Both the position numbers and the translations under genes were made by a program. Shown here in pieces: positions 47,937 to 62,600 of a stretch of DNA of 64,000 bases. The notes below the pieces were generated by a model, which ran no database searches, was not told the origin of the DNA, and saw only the letters and a program-made list of their open reading frames with translations. Position 1 is the stretch's first letter, and every line of letters starts with the position of its first letter. Location of the stretch: NCBI GenBank assembly GCA_020536535.1, contig JAHLWZ010000807.1:62001-126000 (forward strand). The letters run 5' to 3'. Source of the DNA: Pelomyxa schiedti. Its lineage: Eukaryota; Protista; Evosea.

Positions 47937-50900
47937 TTATTCATTCCTGTGCTTCTTTTCCTTCTCCCTGAGTTTGTTCCACTTCTTCTGTTTTGTAGTG
48001 TACAAGGCAAATCCATCTTCCAATACATGCAGAGCTTCATAACAAGTTGGCCTTGAATAAGGTACTGCACTCCAACACGTTTGCAGGAATGAGGACAAGA
48101 CCTGAGGGCATGAACTTGGTATAGTTGGCCTTATGCGTTTCTGTGCCACTTGTACAAGTATTTGAAATTCGGCCTGAATCATTGTGTATTCACTGTAAGG
48201 CCGCACATGCTCACCCTAAAAGTTTTTTTAAAAAGTTGACTATCATGTGTTTTAGTACCTTTAGACATCTGACAACCATCTACATAAAAACGAATCAGAA
48301 TTATAAGGAAAATAGTCCTTTTGTGGGAAAAACGTTTACCTCCCACAGAATAATCGAGAAACTGTATATATCAGACTTGTCTGTGTGAATTCCACCAGTG
48401 AAGACCTCCTAAGGTCCATTGGTTTTGTTGTGGTGTTTGAAGAGACATACAGGACAGCTATAGGCATATGTACCTCTGACTTTATACAGTGTTTCAGAGT
48501 CATCATTTATTCGCGTAGTGCCGAAATCGCTTGTTGTGTAATTTTTAAGAACATATGTGGGGGTATATGAATTTTACCATAACTTGGCGGAACCGTTATC
48601 AGCAATTAGAATGTTGGATGATTTTAAATCCCTGTGGAGAAGCTGGGGTACCCATGAATGAAGGCACGATAGTCCTCTCAGTGTGTCACAGGCGTACATG
48701 AAAACATTTTCCCATGTGAAGGCGGTGTCACTCTTCATGACTCTGGAGGACGGTGTTAATAAGACCGTTGTTGGAACTTATGGGAAAGATTGGCAGGTAC
48801 GTTTCTAGGCTGCCTCTTGAGCAATACTCCAAAACGAGGCAAATGCGAGGTTCTAACACAGCCCCGTAAAAATATACAATATTCGGAGATCGCAGTTCAC
48901 TGAAACGGTTAGTTATTCACAAAGAGAACTCGGTGTCGTTTCAATACCTCAAGAGGGAGAACTCCTTTTTGAAGTCCTGTATTGCACGGCTGTCAGGTTT
49001 TTCTTTCAGTACTTTGACAGCCACATACTGATTACGCCAGACTCCTTTGTACCTGTTGAGAGGAAGGTAAGTATATTAGAAGGATTTTTGAGAACGCACA
49101 GTTTGGCAAAACTTCCAGCCCCGAAAGGCTGCTTCTCTATGTGTTGCTTGATTTCACTCCATTGGATAGCCCACTGTTGTGCGTCCTCTTTTGTATTGTA
49201 ATTGTGAGAATTGGGGTAAATAAGTTCATATGACAACTCATTGGTGATGACTTTCTGGAAGGAGAAGGGGAGTGGGACTCCCTTCTTTCAGATCTTGAAG
49301 AAGCGTTTCGTTCAGATCTCGAAGAAGAGTGTGGAACTGGGTGCGTTCTTTCCGGGGCAGATGTCTACACACAAGTTAAATTAATGGTTAGTAGCAGGTG
49401 AATAACTTTCAGAGAAGGGGGAGACTCTCGAAGGGATGTGCCTGTGACTGGTGCCGATGCTGTCAATGAACCCTGCTCGATACTGGGGGAGGGGGTACTC
49501 TCTCCTGAAGATTGAAGAGATTTGCTTGGAGGTAAGCAATCTACGGGACCAGTATTTTCGTGAAAAGGTGGGCTATGGCCACAATTCTGGCAGAGTCCAC
49601 CTACAGGAAGGTGTCTGGGCCATAAAAATTGCACAAAAACAAGTACCATAATTGGTCCCATAGTATTGATCACATTCACAATTTTCTGTTGTACACGCAC
49701 CTCGTTTGATGGAACCCACACCAGTTGTATCTTGATTTGTTGGGAAATGAGTTAGTAATGGGCGTTATACCTGGTGAGATTATGAGAATTTTCTGTGTTT
49801 TTGCAAGATGGATTCTAGTACGAGGAGACACATCCTAAATTGAAAAAAAGAATTAACAACCATTTTGGAGTGAACAAGCAACTACAGCAAAATCGGAATT
49901 GCCTGACTCTGGCAGTGCCACTCTATCATTTTATTAGGTTTTCTTTCTCCCAGTTTGGGTACCTTTCTTCAGTAAAAGAATTGTGTTGTTCACCACTTGT
50001 AACTAAACTGTACAACGTTGAGAGTTATTTCCCTTGTCGGCTCTATACCTTTGTGATGCATCTTCGACTGAAGAAGGTCCATTTCCATACTCTGCCTAGG
50101 TGAGAGGATTATATTTTGAGTACAATCTTGAGAGCCATTAGTACCTGAGGAGTAAAAACGGGATATGCCTGGAAAAAACTATTTAGACTTTCAGTATCCA
50201 TGATTTCGAGAGCCAAAACAAAGCTTTTCTGAGTACAATTGAAAAAGAAAAAATGGAGGAGAGAAAGTACCACAGCAACATTCACATTTTCTTGGTTTTC
50301 TAGAACTTTCTGCCTCAGTGGCAAGGACAGCTGGTTTTCATAACGGTAGTATACCTCTTCAAGTGCATGTGGACAGTAACGACTGTACTCGTTGCTTGCC
50401 GTATGGGAATTGGGGGTGAAGGGAGCTTCAATTGTGGTGTTTGTCGAACTTGCAGGGGGAATTGAAGTGGGGTTGCAGGAGGGATTGCATGTGTGAGAAG
50501 CTAATGCTGAAGCACATTCATGTGCAAAAGATGCATCACATACAGCGTCAAGATGTGGTTCACGCTTTTCAATGTGATATCGTAGACATGGCCAGGCATA
50601 TTTATCACAAAGAAGGATCAACAGAGTATCATATTGAATAGTAGGTGCTGAAGTCACGGCAGTTTGTAAAATCAACGGAGGGGGTGATTCACAAGGGCTG
50701 TCTGGGATATCTGAAGATGAGCGTTGCCTTGTTCGGTCCTTTCTTCCAAAAAGTTTCTGGAAAAATCCTGTAGTGGCACAAAGTTAGACCACCCCATTAC
50801 CCAAAGGTACAAGTCACACCTGGGGATGGTGTTACAGCAGAACAAGAGGATGAATATTTCCTTGTTTTAGGTGGCGATGAAGGTGCTGCAATCGCCTGCT

Positions 50901-52140
50901 GTGATGTCGGCGGTGTAACAAGCACTGTAGCTGGCAGCACTTGAGCCTGGGGAATAGGAGGAGGGATTGGTGGGTTCTGAGTCGCGGGAGGGAGGAACAT
51001 GTACGAAATCAACGGAGATGCCGCCGGGGATAGCTGTGGTGACACCAGCGGGGATTGAGAAGGCGAAGCACTGCACGAGGAAGAGCCTCCCTCGCCCTTC
51101 AGCTGCCACTGATGATTCTGACTGTGATTCGGAGCCTGGAACATGTTAGAACTGCCCCCACGCGCGGGAGAGCAAGAGGAGGATTGGTTCTGCAGAAACG
51201 GAGGAGGCGGTGGGATTGCACTATGGTGCGAGTGCGACGATGGCGGCGGCATGGAGCTAGATGACGCCCCCGTCCTATGGTGAGGCTGCTGTTGTTGGTG
51301 GTGCTGTAGCCTGAGTGGCATGTGTTGGTTATATTGATTCGTACTTGTAGTAGTAGTAGTATTAGTAGTAGTAGTACTAGTGGGGTTTGTATTTGCATTT
51401 GTATTTGCATGGTTCTGGTTGTGCAGTTTGTGCCCAGACTGTGAACGTGGGACACCCCCACCATTGCCATTACCATTACCACTACCACTACCACTACCAC
51501 TTCCATTGGTGTTGTTGTAGTTGGAGGAGCGGGACGGCGAGGGCGAAGGGTGCAGCACAGAAGGGCAGTCCGTGACGTAGTGGGGGTAAGGGGGGGGCGG
51601 GATCCCCTGGTGCAGGGCGCCCGAGTGCGAGGGCGGCGAGGGAGGCGGCAGGGGCGCCGGGGACATGGGGGGCGACAGGGAGCCCGGGGCGCCCAGCACC
51701 GAGTCGTCGCTGCTGCTGGTGCGGATGCGGTACAGGCGCGGGGGCGCCGCGGGGGGCCCGGCCGACGGCGGGAGCGGGAGCAGCGGGCCCGAGGCGTAGG
51801 TGGCCACGGTGCCCAGCGCCACCCCGCCGTAGTAGCTGCCGCTGCCGCTGCCGCCGCCGGGCTGAAGAGGCGGCGCAGGAGGCGGCGGAATGGGGGGCAG
51901 CCCCGAGAACATCTGCGGGGCCGACGTGGACAGCGGCGCCTTGCGTATGGGGAACGGCGGCGGCGTGGTGCTGTTGGGCCACGGCGTGTCCGTGTTCCGC
52001 GGGGAAACCAGGGCGGCGGTTGGCGGGGCAGGGGGAGGAGGCGGGGGGATGTGGTAGTGTGTCAGCGGGGATATTGCCTGCTGCAGCGGCGGGGGGGGCG
52101 GCGGCCCGTCCGGCCAGCTGCTTCCTTTGTTCCCGTGCAT
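47937..52140 (-). CDS. TKL-group protein kinase with long Pro/Ser/Gly-rich N-terminus and uncharacterised middle domain
   Basis: 'IQWSEIKQHIEKQPFGAGSFAK', 'VWRNQYVAVKVL', 'LRSPNIVYFYGAVLEPRICLVLEYCSRGSL', 'LHRDLKSSNIL', 'DFGTTR', 'SDIYSFSIILWE', 'IRPTIPSSCP..CWSAVPYSRP'. Probable ATG at 52140 (MHGNKGSSW). Confidence 0.85.
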
Positions 52141-52326
52141 CAAGCGGTGTTCGTGCTGGGGTGAGCGCGCGCGTTTGATCACGAAACAAACCAAAAAAAA
52201 AGAGGGGAAAAAAAACGGGCTGGGGAAGACGTTTGATTGATCAATGGCTTCACTTCCATGTTTGAACCGAGCGAACATTTCGTAGATGAAAGTTTCAGGG
52301 AGGCTTGGTCACTTGCGTTACCAGAA

Positions 52327-55032
52327 TTACCTCACGTAGGTGTTCCTACCTCCGTGGTGGTGAACAAATGAAAGGTATGAGCGTGCAGAGTCGAGCACTT
52401 GCTGGTTTGTAAGTATTGCTGCCCCGGGTTCACTGTAGAGAGAGGGAAATATAAGGTGACGGTGTGATGCTGAATGTGTGTCGTTTTGCGTTGTGGTTTG
52501 TTTGCTTACCTTTCGGGTGTGTATTGGGGGTAGTGCAGTGTCATGGTCGCGAACACAGCAGCCGCTCTGTCATAGAACTGGAAAGAATGCAGGCGGGCGG
52601 GAGTAAGTAGTGGTTATAATAAGGGGGCAAAAGGTATACCAGTTTGGCGGTGTCGGTGCACAGGAACTCGGGTATTTGGTGCTCAGTTACAAGTTGAGTG
52701 GCACCACCTGGGCGAACTCCACGGAAGAAGAAGTCGGTTGTGGAATTCCACGTTGAAGAGAAGGCGTTATAAGCCTGATCCATTTGCGTCCACATTTCAT
52801 CTTGAGCTTTGAGGCTTGAAGTCCGACTGATGGGAAAATGAATGAGAAATGTAGAAAAAATTGGAAGCTGACTGTTCTCGCTCAGACATCAGTGTGCCTG
52901 TTCCTTGTATCCTCGGGTCTTGCAACATAAAAATAACCGCCTTTATGCCGGCCATGACAAGCTTGCCTGCGCATTGATGGCACGGTTCGAGACTTGTATA
53001 AACTGTTACTTCGCGAAGAAATGATTGTTTCCATGATGCAGATGCACTGTCTAGAGTAACACTCATGTTGTGTGGATGCCTGGCAAATTTGTTAACCAAA
53101 AAGAAAAATACGGTATATAAGATCACCTGAAAAGGGTATCTACCAAGCGTTCTTCAGCATGTTCAGTGGTGCTCTCAAAAATTTTATTGTGGTTGAATGC
53201 GTGCAATATTATACTCCCATCTGCAAAGAGAATGCACTTAATTTTGCCTCAAACACGATTGTCCTGAGAAACCTTTACGGACAGCAAAACATGCTATGTT
53301 ATGCCCAACATAGGTTGGTCTGTCAATTTGATAAACCCACTGCCCTCTAATCGCACAGGGTGTATTGCTAGCTTCCATCTCCCTTTGCACTAAAAAAATG
53401 TAGTGAGGAACGTGTTGTCTCTAAGTTTGTATGATTTTATTCCCCCCAGTAAGGGAAATACTTATTCTTTAACTCACTTGCACGGTGAGGATATGTCCCA
53501 AGTAAGCCATACATATTTCCATTAAATTGATCAGCAAGTATTGAGGCCAGACATAAGCAATATATCTTATTAAGATAAGGAGGGAACGTGAACGAAATGA
53601 GGAAATGCGTACTTGCTGCCTTTCCGCTTCAAAGGGTGTGAGTCTCGGCTGAGCTTCAATGATTAGTGAAGGATCACAAAGGTAGGCTTTTCCTGTCATG
53701 GAAGTCCACATTTGGAAAACGCTAACAGTACAATAAGAACGTGATAAAAAAAACAGAATTAAGATCAGTGAACCTTTGGGTATCTTGCTTCGCCTGAGTC
53801 ACTTGAAGATGTAGTGCAATCATTCTACATATTGGAAGAATCAAGTCCACATTAGCCGCACCTGCAACATAATTCGCGGTGAGTAGAGAACTTAATCAAA
53901 AGAGCCAAAGGGGAAGCAACTTGGAGTAGCGAAATGGGTTACAAAAGCATCTTCACGTGCCGTTTCAGATTCAAAGCAAGACTGTAAGGTTCTACAAATT
54001 TTAAGGGTGGCGACAATAGCCTCACTTGGAGCAGATTGAAATTCGTTCATGAACCTCGTAAGTGCTTCGTTTTTCATTTGCTCTAAGAATTTACAAAAAT
54101 ATGAAGTTAGACAATAGAAAGAATGTGTGGTTGTGGGGTATTGTAGAACGTTGAAAAGCACCAGTTGCAGTGAAAGGCTCCCTTTTACTGTGATACAGCT
54201 TCTCCAATGTATTTTCAACCACGATGGCCTCCCGTTTCAATAGACCAACTACAACTTCGCAGATACTAGGATTTGACGCCATCACCGAAGAAGACATTAC
54301 TTGAGAAGAAGCACCCATCAATTCAGGTGTTGTTGTTGCAGTTGTTGTTGCAGTTGCAGTTGCTGCTGAAGAGGTGCTAGTAAACAGAACGCTTGAAGTT
54401 GTAGGCATAGAGGTCAGCAATGGCATCACAACAGCCCCAGTCGGCGATGTTACATGCGTAGTTACCAACATTGTGGGAGCCGCCGCGGCCGCCGCCGCCG
54501 CTGCGGCAGCGCGCTTGGATGCGCCGCGACCTTTGGTGGTCTCACGGGGCGGTGGGGCTGTGATTGAAACCCCGGTCGTTCTCGAGATTGCGGTCAATGC
54601 TGAACGAATGACAGCTTGGTATAACTTACAGAACTTGAGTTGTTGCTTCGAGAACTCCTTGATGGAGCGAACGGTATGTTTCGGCGACAGAATAGAGGAA
54701 AGCCCGAGCACACTGGACGAAGAACAGCATGCTGAAGAAGAGATGCTGCTCGAGACAACTACGGAAGTAGAACAAGCAATTGGTGCCGGAGTCGTCGTCG
54801 GGGGAGGAGGCGTGGAGCAGGGCGTGGTAATGGTGCTATTAATAGCACTGGCAGTGGCTGTGGTGCCAGGTTGGTTCTGAATGGGATTTGGTGTTGTGGG
54901 AGTGGGCTGGGGTGTATCAACAGGGAGAAGGCCAAATGCGGTCTTGTTCACTTTGGTGCCGAAGGGTGTCACAAATGACAAGAGCGACTCGTCCCCAACT
55001 CCACCTCGTTTGCTCCCTCTTCTAGTTGCCAT
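52327..55032 (-). CDS. Zinc-dependent nucleic-acid/nucleotide deaminase (HAE...PCxxC), predicted fused to a Thr/Ser-rich and helical N-terminal region
   Basis: Spliced exons: 'FEAERQQ|IYCLCLASILADQFNGNMYGLLGTYPHRA', 'YVGHNIACFAVRK|DGSIILHAFNHNKIFESTTEHAEERLVDTLF', 'VTVYTSLEPCHQCAGKLVMAGIKAVIFMLQDP', 'IPEFLCTDTAKL|FYDRAA', 'ILTNQQVLDSARSYL'. Canonical GT-AG splices join it in frame to upstream exons starting MATRRGSK (55032). Confidence 0.75.
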
Positions 55033-59225: not shown

Positions 59226-59669
59226 CACACACCAATGATACTTTGGTTTTTTCTTTTTTTTTTTTTTTTTCTTTCCTTCCCTCTTCCACGTTTCGTAGTC
59301 AATCAGCGAAATGTCAAAGCACAAAGTGATCGGTTTCGTCCTGCCCGAGTGTTACCACTGAGGTACAGAACCTGAAATTTCCCCTGCCAAAGTACACTGT
59401 TGTTGGCACATTTTTCCGTAGACAACAGGTACAGGGGTCGTCCAGTTAACAAAAGATCCACAAGGAAGATTGGGAACCCAAGATGGAACGAAGCACACGT
59501 CAACTGTCAAGTGTAATTTTATTTCCTACCGAGTGTAAGTCTGTTTCACTTAACCGTGCTAAGTTCCCATGCCGCAGAAATTACCACATTTCCCAAATCA
59601 CAATTCCGTGTACTGTTTTCCAAACAAAACAACGCAACAACAAAAACCCCAAACGAGCCTCCAGGGCAA

Positions 59670-62600
59670 ATGTCATCATCCTCGTCACCCTCTTCCTCGT
59701 CGTCATCGTCCTCACAAGAACACCATCATCACACACGGCATACTGGTAAACACAGAAACCACGAGCACCACAGCCGTCACGATCACAAACACAACGAAAT
59801 AGCACCAGAGAACAACCGGGAGAACTCTTCTTCTAGAAGCAGGCACGAAAAGGACGAAGAGCAGGGGAGTAAAACCACCACAGACATCATGATTGCTGAC
59901 GAACAGAGCGCTAAATCTGCTGACGGGAATGAGACTGAGAACCCATCTCAGTCTTCAGTCTCTGTGGAGGGGACTGAAAAGCTGCCGTGGAGTATGAGAC
60001 TGAAGAAGTTTTTCTATGGGGTTTTCAGAGAGGCCCTGTTGGCAAAGCTTCTGGCTGCCCTGCTTGCCAAATTGGGCAGATTCAATTCCAGGCACCCTTT
60101 TTTGGTGATTGGAATAGGTTCCACTATCGCTATAGGGCTTGCCTTTGGATTATTTGCCGCTGAGGTAGAAAGCAGGCCTGTGGCTCTATGGGTTCCGGCT
60201 CACATCAGGAGCAATGAGGAAAGAAAGTTCTATGATAAAACATTCAGCCCATTTTTCCGCATTGAGCAGATTATTACTACTGCCCCTGCGGAGGGTGATA
60301 ATGCCCTAGAGACGGACACACTACTGGAAATGCTCGAGCTAGAAAACCTCGTTTATAATATAAGTGTAATGCACCAGGGCAGAAGTTACACACTGAATGA
60401 CATATGCTATCGGCCTACTTCTTTTGCCCCATGTGTGGCCCAGACAGTGCTGGACTATTGGTATGATAAGCCAACACAGAAGCACAGTGCTCAGAAAATT
60501 GAAGATGATACCGACCTGTTTTACACCGTGGCCCACGCTGCAAAGACTCCGCTTGGGAACCCAATAATGAGAGACAATGTTGTGTCACCGATTCTTAATG
60601 ATATCAACCCCACATTAAAACCTTGCTTTCTGACAACTTACCTGGTGCGGAACACTGATGAGCTAAGGGGGGCAGCGGAAACCTGGGAGAGGGAGTGGCT
60701 GAAAGTGTTGGAAGCGAAACAACCACTACTGAACCGATCAAGCATCTGGTATGCCGCAGAGGTGCGAATATCCCCACTTTATCATCCAAATATCCCATAG
60801 AAATATAAAGAAATTGATTCCCAAATAACGGAGTAAATCACTGAGTTCATGGAGAAAAGGTTTCAATTCAAGACGAACTGAAAAAAGAGATCTCTGCCGA
60901 TTCATATGTCATTGCATCTAGCTATATAATTATGTTTATTTACGTTGGGATCACGCTTGGCAAATTGAATCCAGTTCACTCCAAATTCATAATTGGATTT
61001 GCAGGAGTCTTTATAATCGTTATAGCAATTGTTTCAGCGTTTGGTTTTTCGTCTCTCATCAGCATACCTTTTTCTCCAATAAGGTTTGAATGAACTTTCA
61101 TCGTAATGTTTGTTTGACCTGTTAATGCAGTGCCCAAGTTGTACCTTTTCTTGTACTAGCTACAGGAATTGATGACATGTTCATAATTGTGAATGGCTAT
61201 CATGAACTGGAGGAAAATGAGCGGGCTGCAGAAGAAGGTACTATTTAGCATAATTAATATTTGAAATTAATTGCCTTTCAAGGGGAGAATGAAAGTGAAG
61301 AGGAAAAAGCCGAAAGGGCGAGAAAAGAAAGGAAACGACTCAAATCAATGTCCTCAAAAGAGTTGTGGGCAGTTGTGGAAGAGAAAATGGGAAGAACTCT
61401 TGCCCATATTGGTCCCAGCCTCACATTATCACAAGGCTCCAATTTTATTGGAATGATGGTTGGCAGGTTTGTAAATATCCAAAACCTTCAATGATAACAA
61501 GGCTAGTGTTACAGGAATGCCCGCCATGAATATGTTTTGCTGGCAAGCTGGCTTTGCCGTCATTATGGTACTATTTCTTGAGTTGACTGTATTCTGTAGT
61601 TTTGTAGCTCTGGACGCTTTCAGAGAGTTGGTTGATACCCTTTATCCTCTATCCTTCATGACAGTATTCAGTCTTACCGTGTGGACCTTTTGTGCTGCAT
61701 CAAACTTGACCCTGAAAAATATGAAAGCAAGAGTGTGGCTTGTGATTGCAAGTGCAAAAAATGGCTGCAAATGGGAATAGTTCGCAAGTTTATCTCGGAC
61801 TACTTGACACCTTTTATCCTTCATAAATATTTCCGCTGGGGAGTTGTAAGTAAACCTCGTTCCTCGTAGTTTTGGCCTTTGAACCTTTTTATCAGATTGG
61901 AGTCTTTTTAGCTTTATTTGGTGTAAGCATCTGGGGTACTACGACAGCTGAAATGGGCCTTGGCGTGAACGACGTCATGCCTAGGGGCTCCTATGTTGTC
62001 CCTTTCAATGACCATCGTGAGGATTACTTTGGACACCTCGGTTGATATTCCGAGTATTGGCATTTTGTGACCGTTTCTAGGTCCCCCTGTGTATCTTGTT
62101 TTTGGAGAGCATGCCTACGAAACAAACGAAATTCAAGATGAAATAACTTCCTTGGAGGATAGTCTTGCTGCCAGTGAATATACGCAAGATAAAATACTTT
62201 CTTGGTTAGATGACTACATGTATGTAATGCTAACTTGTTACCTTGAATAATGTGCATCAAGAGTCTGGTGCGTATCCATGCACGGGAAAAACATGACTAT
62301 TGACCCCATTAACCCCACTAAACGGCGTATACCTCCTGCCGATTTTCTGCCTTGGCTTCATGACTTTCTCAGTGATAATGTGACCACAATGTCGCCCCTT
62401 GGTCTTAATATCCTTCTTTCTCCTTCATATCTTAGTAACAGTTAAAATAGGTCCTTCTCATAAAGAGGATATTACATTCGACCCAGTAACTGGGAATATT
62501 ACTGCCAGTAGGGTTTTTGGTTACTACATTGGTCTAACAAGTTCCCAAAGTAATCTCCAGGTTGTAATTCTCTTTACCAAAATCACTACAGTGTATGTCG

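Follow-up and report, generated by a model that had tools for sequence, protein, structure and literature searches.

A TadA-related zinc deaminase module of mostly bacterial type behind a lineage-specific front part in the archamoeba Pelomyxa schiedti

Deaminases of the cytidine deaminase (CDA)-like fold have moved from bacteria into eukaryotes repeatedly, becoming editors or mutators such as ADAT, ADAR, APOBEC and DYW. Here, we describe Pelo_11023, a zinc deaminase gene of the anaerobic amoeba Pelomyxa schiedti, which belongs to the Archamoebae, a group that includes the free-living kin of Entamoeba. The gene lies in a stretch of 64,000 nucleotides (contig JAHLWZ010000807.1 of assembly GCA_020536535.1, positions 62,001 to 126,000), which we call the window and to which all coordinates of the gene refer. 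Two described branches of deaminases serve as points of comparison. TadA is recognized by a Glu before strand 1, an Asn in strand 2, an EPCxMC motif and a basic residue after strand 4, and the TadA-related Bd3614-like deaminases by an HAExN motif, the loss of the terminal strand 5 and added N-terminal sequence (Iyer et al. 2011, PMC3239186). Pelo_11023 has the HAE and PCxxC motifs of the CDA/TadA/APOBEC superfamily, scores above the gathering score of Pfam dCMP_cyt_deam_1 and is predicted to have the fold. Our overall best explanation, to which we assign a probability of about 0.7, is that it is a native gene in which a complete module of a mostly bacterial family follows a lineage-specific front part. 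What would be new is an unstudied TadA-related family with a small eukaryotic branch, fused to a new front part in Pelomyxidae.

Gene structure, expression and fusion of the two parts

Pelo_11023 is a single gene on the minus strand of the window (55032..52327), with 11 exons that hold 698 codons and a stop. Removal of its ten GT..AG introns (46-88 nt each) leaves a single frame of 698 residues, whose translation shows no differences from the public protein P0001, annotated as 'hypothetical protein Pelo_11023 [Pelomyxa schiedti]'. The ATG is preceded by an in-frame stop 14 codons further 5', GC content is 48.7% in exons and 37.9% in introns, and the gene is located on a 130-kb contig with eukaryotic genes around it. 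Its intron count fits the genome, since P. schiedti genes contain 7.4 introns on average (PMC8887013). We take Pelo_11023 to be a native and expressed nuclear gene. The motifs quoted in the original prediction were all found on the minus strand where it had placed them, and the canonical in-frame splices that it had proposed agree with the public gene model. An earlier donor for intron 1, 27 nt before the public one, was considered and dropped, as the orthologue in the sister genus Mastigella backs the public donor (FTATE/FNATE). The features of the gene are the following:

52327..55032, minus strand: whole coding region of Pelo_11023, translation identical to P0001
54162..55032, minus strand: exon 1, residues 1-290; basic start MATRRGSKR, T/S/A/P-rich low complexity, beginning of the helical region; includes two short motifs common with Mastigella, LSFVTPFGT and IKEFSKQQLKFCKLYQAVIRSALTA
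53921..54082, minus strand: exon 2, residues 291-344; helical region, conserved in Mastigella
53774..53861, minus strand: exon 3, residues 345-373; conserved in Mastigella isoform P0108 (LPICRMIALHLQVTQAKQDT versus IPMLRIVAMQGLISREKQDT)
53613..53721, minus strand: exon 4, residues 374-410; Met382 at 53699..53697, where the bacterial-type module starts
53478..53565, minus strand: exon 5, residues 411-439; deaminase helix 1 (IYCLCLASILADQF) and the family-specific NGN; RNA joints on both sides
53273..53389, minus strand: exon 6, residues 440-478; remainder of the insert, GHNIA at strand 1; RNA joints
53127..53220, minus strand: exon 7, residues 479-509; strand 2 AFNHN, zinc/catalytic H499-A-E501; RNA joints
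52873..53079, minus strand: exon 8, residues 510-578; zinc ligands C543 and C546 (PCHQC), LQDP after strand 4; RNA joints
52640..52826, minus strand: exon 9, residues 579-641; family-specific C-terminal extension, FLCTD helix; RNA joints
52510..52577, minus strand: exon 10, residues 642-663; C-terminal extension; RNA joints on both sides
52327..52432, minus strand: coding part of exon 11, residues 664-698 and stop; last helix, tail …GGRNTYVR aligned with bacterial …RGTPH
52220..52326, minus strand: 3' untranslated region of at least 107 nt; RNA contig X2 record 3 is unbroken from 52432 to 52220
Motifs of the front part and the start of the module, minus strand: MATRRGSKR from 55032; AERQQIYCL from 53624; FNGN 53526..53515; GHNIAC 53306..53289
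Motifs of the catalytic core, minus strand: AFNHN 53200..53186; EHAEERL 53161..53144; PCHQC (of YTSLEPCHQC) 52985..52971
Motifs beyond the core, minus strand: QDP 52925..52914; EFLCTD.AK 52666..52652; stop 52327

The RNA evidence consists of assembled contigs, rather than raw reads, from two single-cell RNA libraries of one study. Introns 4-10 are precisely skipped in these contigs (joints at 52432/52510, 52577/52640, 52826/52873, 53078-9/53126-7, 53220/53273, 53389/53478 and 53565/53613), and at intron 3 (53721/53774), RNA contig X1 extends beyond exon 4 by a 14-nt overhang that belongs to the end of exon 3. In total, eight of the ten introns are backed by RNA contigs and exons 3-11 are expressed; exon 1 is represented by a single unspliced contig of 151 nt (54406-54556). 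Two positions at which RNA and genome differ were considered as sites of RNA editing and rejected. At 52377, one RNA contig (depth 4) has G for A, a change absent from the second RNA run and from the two DNA runs; this difference, which would give Y683H and on the sense strand is neither A-to-I nor C-to-U, is probably an allele or an error. The T>C difference at 53150 is an allele, being present in DNA too.

The front part and the deaminase are fused in one gene, as had been proposed; RNA contigs, the gene model and transcripts of Mastigella eilhardi agree on a fusion to some 380 residues of lineage-specific sequence. In M. eilhardi, transcripts P0002, P0108 and P0110 contain front part and deaminase in one frame, and residues 265-413 of P0001 align with residues 108-270 of P0108 at 37% identity (E-value 1e-31), an alignment that spans the exon 1/2, 2/3 and 3/4 junctions. 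There are four M. eilhardi isoforms (P0002, P0108, P0109 and P0110), which vary in two places, the counterpart of Pelomyxa exon 3 and the 3' end; P0109 (317 residues) codes for the module alone and starts at the Met equivalent to Met382. Further information comes from a second allele in a DNA run, which carries four single-nucleotide polymorphisms (SNPs) in exons, all of them synonymous (P41, E285, L363 and E502), and has lost 3 nt of a Pro run without a change of frame, with two of the SNPs and the deletion falling in exon 1; the introns of this allele hold three SNPs and a 1-nt insertion. Because the exon SNPs are synonymous and the exon indel is in-frame, the whole frame, including exon 1, is under purifying selection.

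The front part (residues 1-381) starts without any signal-peptide-like sequence and is dominated by four amino acids in its first two-thirds, T, S, A and P together making up 54% of residues 1-264. It matched no Pfam family, with UME and DUF3825 below threshold. Its length is about 380 residues in Pelomyxa and about 240 in Mastigella, and the two short motifs that both genera have in common lie near the N-terminus. Since Met382 and the initial Met of the bacterial proteins described below fall together in the alignment, we consider the front part to have been added upstream of a complete bacterial-type frame.

The deaminase module, its bacterial family and its fold

Residues 382-698 (317 residues) constitute a full-length copy of a family of zinc deaminases of 320-350 residues. 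Over residues ~466-573 of P0001, Pfam reports dCMP_cyt_deam_1 with 43.1 bits (cut-off 25) and MafB19-deam with 41.8 bits (cut-off 27), well above what chance would give, and when exons are scanned singly, exon 8 alone matches (MafB19-deam 35 bits, dCMP_cyt_deam_1 29.3 bits). These are two of the three profiles that the original prediction had named for a check; the third, Bd3614-deam, stayed below its cut-off. The family itself was found with exon 8 as the query against 1.84 billion representatives and with subsequent word searches; whole-protein work used P0001. The search returned proteins of 310-370 residues that match the last 320 residues end to end, and when prokaryotes were scanned with one genome for each species, relatives turned up in at least 553 bacterial species, with full-length matches at 28-35% identity. 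The 80 best bacterial matches of these (of at least 553) have 26-40% identity, most of them over residues ~14-316 of 319. Carriers include Acidobacteriota, Planctomycetota, Bradyrhizobium, Streptomyces, Nitrospira, Myxococcota, Bacteroidota and Verrucomicrobiota, in line with the earlier description of a bacterial type of module with N- and C-terminal additions of its own. One match of the exon-8 search was discarded: P0003 (E-value 1.7e-12), a tandem-repeat protein of 564 residues whose eight repeats 'TCT(L/Q)CAGAH' make it a repeat artefact and no deaminase.

The family signature consists of NGN, GHNI, FNHN, S..EHAE.RL, LE(P/S)C.QC.G, LQ.DP, FLCTD and a C-terminal R-G-x-x-H/R tail. P0001 has every one of these motifs, collinear and over the full length, and scores 308 bits with the hidden Markov model (HMM) of the family. 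Invariant in alignment A3 are Y87, G89, H90, N91, I92, N109, S116, H120, A121, E122 and R124, as well as L161, C164, Q166, C167 and G169. P0001 has H499-A-E501 and P542-C543-H-Q-C546, in columns that do not vary among 57 family members; His499, Cys543 and Cys546 are the predicted zinc ligands and Glu501 the predicted proton shuttle. From this intact and invariant catalytic set we infer that the enzyme is catalytically active, that is, a hydrolytic deaminase. The bacterial members are stand-alone, single-domain proteins that begin a few residues before the module, have no signal-peptide-like N-terminus and appear to be cytosolic. There is no specific Pfam, NCBIfam or PADLOC model for the family and no solved structure. 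The NCBIfam scan gave nothing near any cut-off, the PADLOC scan gave at most matches of 15-22 bits over 33-123 residues near the zinc motif (to a dCTPase model), and the models LmjF36.5940, DYW and OTT_1508 were not among the Pfam hits for P0001. Judged by its sequence, the module would form an unnamed clade in the TadA-like division.

An AlphaFold2 model of residues 380-698, built with a 57-sequence alignment, is a single compact domain with a predicted local distance difference test score (pLDDT) of 88.9 and a predicted template modeling (TM) score of 0.89. All five strands are present in the model, the fifth at module residues 203-206. Helix 1 is followed by an insert of about 50 residues that carries NGN and precedes strand 1; what had been taken for an N-terminal helical extension is thus mostly the canonical helix 1, and then this insert. 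Past the core, about 110 residues form a hairpin, the FLCTD helix and a long last helix. The resulting ~170 extra residues and the nearly invariant C-terminal tail pack against the core, and neither the NGN insert nor the C-terminal extension had a match among solved structures. In fold searches (Foldseek, VIA-align), the alignments to TadA, ADAT2/3 and Msmeg3575 covered about 140 of 319 residues and had Z scores of about 13. Individual values were 12.7-13.2 for TadA/ADAT2, 12.9 for Msmeg3575, 11.7 for guanosine deaminase and 11.0 for yeast cytosine deaminase (yCD); dCMP deaminases were likewise within 11-13, and APOBEC and toxin deaminase folds scored 3.8-5.8. When the sequence profile was compared with solved structures, TadA was the best match (E-value 2e-9), with cytosine and guanine deaminases at 3e-3 to 8e-3. 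In the ESM Atlas, the family has a bacterial cluster of its own (TM 0.79), named 'hypothetical protein'.

Eukaryote-like relatives and the origin of the module

The genes of Pelomyxa and Mastigella belong to one group defined by the motifs HAEERL..D.LF and LEPCHQCAGKL. Its further members are the following:

L084, positions 794-2074 of a 2-kb Logan contig: eukaryotic gene with a truncated product (P0095) and a HEAT-like front part
P0005: on a 1.2-kb transcript-like contig
P0038/P0114/P0115: on a 63%-GC contig (L085) with a Ty3-type retrotransposon
P0007, P0010 and P0015: three further members
P0028/P0111 (loci L086 and L087): with an RRM/qRRM-like insert at P0028:395-500 and P0111:70-175
P0073, L081:1-12936: on a 39.9-kb metagenome contig, to which L082 is near-identical

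L084 is the nearest relative of the Pelomyxidae genes; its flanks are poly-Q/N-rich, and it has an intron between CAGKL and KMAGVK, a place without an intron in Pelomyxa. This intron, and the Ty3-type retrotransposon of L085, speak for these members being eukaryotic. Besides P0073 itself, the contig of P0073 has genes for the small subunit of ribonucleotide reductase, a fragment of the large one, an HNH protein, a Vps4-like AAA ATPase and a GMC oxidoreductase, along with many ORFans, and may derive from a giant virus or from a compact protist genome. A scan of IMG/VR for viral family members was blank.

As the original prediction had called for, we tested the position of the gene in a phylogeny. 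An unrooted maximum-likelihood tree was built from nine eukaryote-like rows (P0095 was left out, and P0114 stood for its cluster) and 59 bacterial rows. A single branch parts the nine from the 59 (UFBoot 100 / SH-aLRT 98), the eukaryote-like rows being long. That the bacterial side of the tree is so broad suggests, short of proof, that the family is of bacterial origin; no donor lineage was identifiable among the bacterial rows, and no relative was found in other Amoebozoa in the databases searched. Any transfer would be old and would not have been made directly into Pelomyxa, because the gene belongs to a eukaryote-like clade, contains ten introns and is shared with Mastigella. The idea of a laterally acquired gene is supported in part, and does not hold for a recent event. 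The gene is an orphan within the known Amoebozoa, but not beyond them.

In the window, no second copy of the deaminase gene was found. The next gene downstream is a P/Q/H/N/T-rich low-complexity frame with a GC content of 54% (50797-52278, minus strand), whose upstream end comes within about 60 nt of the 3' untranslated region of the deaminase gene. In addition, an open frame on the plus strand (59556-60800) matches the NPC1 middle luminal domain (PF22314, 64 bits).

Possible substrates, alternative explanations and known deaminases

In our preferred explanation, the module is a complete copy of the bacterial-family enzyme, composed of a TadA/ADAT2-like core, the NGN insert and the extension with FLCTD and an Arg-containing tail. 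The family is widespread as a stand-alone protein of 320-350 residues in soil and water bacteria, with a small divergent clade in eukaryotes and possibly in a giant virus. In Pelomyxa and Mastigella, a lineage-specific front part, made of a disordered T/S/P/A-rich segment and a helical one, has been joined upstream of the old start codon, Met382, which is still present in frame; this front part would place or regulate the enzyme or bind a partner. The likeliest substrate would be adenine or cytosine in RNA, at a site other than the TadA site, and we hold the view that the substrate is an RNA base tentatively, as slightly less than an even bet. Kinship with TadA and the insert in one clade member weakly favor it. 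In P0028/P0111, the C-terminal extension has a surface loop into which an RRM/qRRM-like domain (ILIEGL … GRAFVQF) is inserted; this domain scores 21.3 bits in P0111 and 16.1 bits in P0028 with RRM_1 (cut-off 20.7), and its six best PDB hits are all hnRNP H/F qRRMs. Long non-enzymatic front parts have been added both in the amoebae and in L084. That the amoeba genes and their eukaryote-like relatives form a new class of RNA-editing deaminases, acting on sites other than tRNA A34 in anaerobic amoebae and further protists and aimed by lineage-specific parts, we consider unlikely.

The neighborhoods of the bacterial genes give a different indication. Although most of the 80 bacterial loci have no conserved neighbor, two kinds of redox genes recur. 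A trio, consisting of a lipoprotein-like protein of ~490 residues with a C-terminal CxxCH, a protein of ~195 residues without a Pfam match and a GMC flavoprotein of ~620 residues, is found near the deaminase in 14-15 of 80 loci. It occurs in Acidobacteriota, Alphaproteobacteria and Gemmatimonadota and in three arrangements (upstream on the same strand, downstream on the same strand, and convergent). The second is an iron enzyme of 560-600 residues of the Haem_oxygenas_2 family (PF14518), which adjoins the deaminase in 4 of 80 loci and in L088. In L088, 55 bp downstream of the deaminase, it forms a fusion with LodA_N/LodA_C (lysine-oxidase type), and a LodB-like flavoprotein comes next. The loci are the following:

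L001:1861-5864, L004, L013, L015, L017-L019, L023, L025, L026, L033, L037, L052 and L055: loci with the trio
L088:6027-10335, L032:4067-5746, L051:3099-4898 and L010:8610-10289: loci with Haem_oxygenas_2

A relation of the L081 GMC oxidoreductase to the GMC protein of these bacterial neighborhoods was considered and rejected, as only the Rossmann start matches and there is no specific kinship; a GMC gene is absent from the window.

Several observations weigh against our explanation, and most of them concern the substrate. The bacterial redox neighbors, both the trio and the Haem_oxygenas_2 enzyme, favor a small-molecule substrate, and no RNA-modification genes were among the conserved neighbors in the bacterial loci examined. 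The RRM signal is at threshold and was seen in one lineage only, and fold scores do not separate TadA/ADAT from the free-base and nucleoside enzymes, which lie within 1-2 Z units. It is quite possible, if short of probable, that the enzyme works in metabolism and deaminates a free base, a nucleoside, a nucleotide or another small amine, with a front part that affects location or stability only. This would account for the tie of Msmeg3575, guanosine deaminase and yCD with TadA in fold searches, and for small-molecule oxidases beside about a quarter of the bacterial loci, in gene orders that vary across phyla. The ~170 extra residues and the nearly invariant tail that pack on the core likewise fit a metabolic enzyme; in yCD and guanine deaminase, the C-terminal tail closes a small pocket. 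However, the sequence profile prefers TadA (2e-9 versus at least 3e-3 for cytosine and guanine deaminases), one clade member carries the RRM-like insert, most bacterial loci have no conserved neighbor, and long disordered fusions would be uncommon in metabolic enzymes. The remaining points concern the front part. A feature search of the ESM Atlas gave nothing usable for it, a word search for relatives returned Mastigella alone, and its AlphaFold2 model shows helices at low confidence (pLDDT 40-66). In addition, introns 1 and 2 are without RNA coverage in P. schiedti, so that of the two junctions which the original prediction had proposed to check in RNA, the one at 53721/53774 was borne out by the 14-nt overhang and the one at intron 2 (53861/53921) was left without coverage. 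The fusion might then be an annotation artefact, with two genes, or a deaminase-only gene that starts from exon 3 or 4, and because Mastigella isoform P0109 begins at the equivalent of Met382, P. schiedti might also make a shorter product from this codon. We nevertheless regard an artefact as quite improbable, considering that three Mastigella transcripts hold both parts in one frame, that RNA links exon 4 to exon 3, which precedes Met382, that the differences in exon 1 between alleles are synonymous or in-frame, and that the frame is open from 55032 to 52327 via canonical splices of typical size.

Three other explanations concern the role, kinship and origin of the module. A mutator-type deaminase, serving defense or as a toxin and directed at foreign DNA or RNA in the manner of APOBEC or polymorphic toxins, would fit the MafB19-deam score above cut-off, the patchy distribution and the member on a giant-virus-like contig, but it is an improbable reading: PADLOC gave no more than the partial dCTPase matches mentioned above, APOBEC and toxin folds score far lower, IMG/VR was blank, and the bacterial members are stand-alone, without toxin-delivery domains or, in 80 loci, a conserved small downstream gene. 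The original prediction had likened the module to the Bd3614-like clade, in favor of which it can be said that Bd3614-deam recurs below threshold across the family in Pfam (17-27 bits), that P0107, a true member of that clade, shares LEPCHQCAG and the N/QDP after strand 4, and that both are TadA-related branches with N-terminal additions (PMC3239186). This assignment did not survive, and we now rate it as very improbable. With a Bd3614-deam cut-off of 38.5 bits, P0001 scores 17.7 and Mastigella 17.5, versus 47 for P0107 as the positive control. Conversely, the family HMM gives P0107 49.5 bits, which equals ordinary small TadA-like proteins, versus more than 200 for full-length members; P0107 is thus no closer than those. 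An Atlas cluster of Bdellovibrionota NUDIX+deaminase proteins reaches TM 0.42, versus 0.79 for the family's own cluster, and the differences in motif and strand given below point the same way. Least credible of all is a recent transfer from a bacterium, such as an endosymbiont of Pelomyxa, or contamination of the assembly with bacterial DNA. It has in its favor that the great majority of the family is bacterial and that P. schiedti has bacterial symbionts (PMC10579272). The introns, the Mastigella orthologue and the tree exclude both variants: there are ten spliceosomal introns, eight of them spliced in RNA, the 130-kb contig holds eukaryotic genes, identity to bacterial relatives is only 26-40% among the 80 best matches of at least 553, and the gene falls in a separate eukaryote-like clade with support of 100/98.

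Our preferred explanation of a native gene with a complete family module thus has consequences that depend on the substrate. If the enzyme acts on RNA, an editing system would have been added in Archamoebae, together with a new enzyme scaffold; if it represents a new class of RNA editors, it would offer a compact new base-editing scaffold that goes back to a bacterial enzyme of wide distribution. Action on a small molecule would point to an unknown bacterial metabolic step tied to GMC and haem-oxygenase-like oxidases. The family is readily testable, because its bacterial members are single-domain and apparently cytosolic.

Compared with known deaminases, the module has the following likenesses and differences. 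It passes the Pfam cut-off of the MafB19-like toxins, a score that by itself shows no toxin kinship because dCMP_cyt_deam_1 scores equal or higher for most of the proteins. Msmeg3575, guanine and guanosine deaminase and yCD have fold scores near those of TadA, but their sequence-profile matches are much weaker, and with 150-190 residues they are without the NGN insert and the FLCTD extension. The Bd3614-like deaminases (PF14439) resemble the family in being TadA-related, in their extra N-terminal sequence, in their patchy spread over bacteria and eukaryotes and in the LEPCHQCAG helix, which is also found in P0107; Pelo_11023 differs from them in having HAEERL instead of HAExN and in keeping the fifth strand in the AlphaFold2 model, and an rRNA-methylase was not among the conserved neighbor clusters of the 80 bacterial loci. 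The Bd3614-like deaminases also have an N-terminal globular domain, Bd3614N; the front part of the amoeba gene matched no Pfam family and gave no confident fold. The greatest likeness is to TadA and ADAT2, with which Pelo_11023 has in common HAE, the (P/S)CxxC helix reading LEPC…CAG, the strand-2 Asn, five strands and the helices of the 'helix-4' division. On the evidence of its sequence, the module is nevertheless neither TadA nor ADAT2. Of the TadA signature, it has kept only N488 (AFNHN) and the Glu of LEPC, with GHN where TadA has the Glu before strand 1, CHQC (in which Q is invariant) where it has CxMC and LQDP where it has the basic residue, and it scores 25.5 bits with the NCBIfam TadA equivalog, versus a cut-off of 150. 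The earlier statement that it does not resemble ADAT2/3, CDA or dCMP deaminase therefore stands. The bacteria that carry the family, large-genome soil and water taxa, would be expected to have a TadA of their own, and the module is twice as large as TadA/ADAT2, owing to the 50-residue NGN insert and the 110-residue C-terminal extension.

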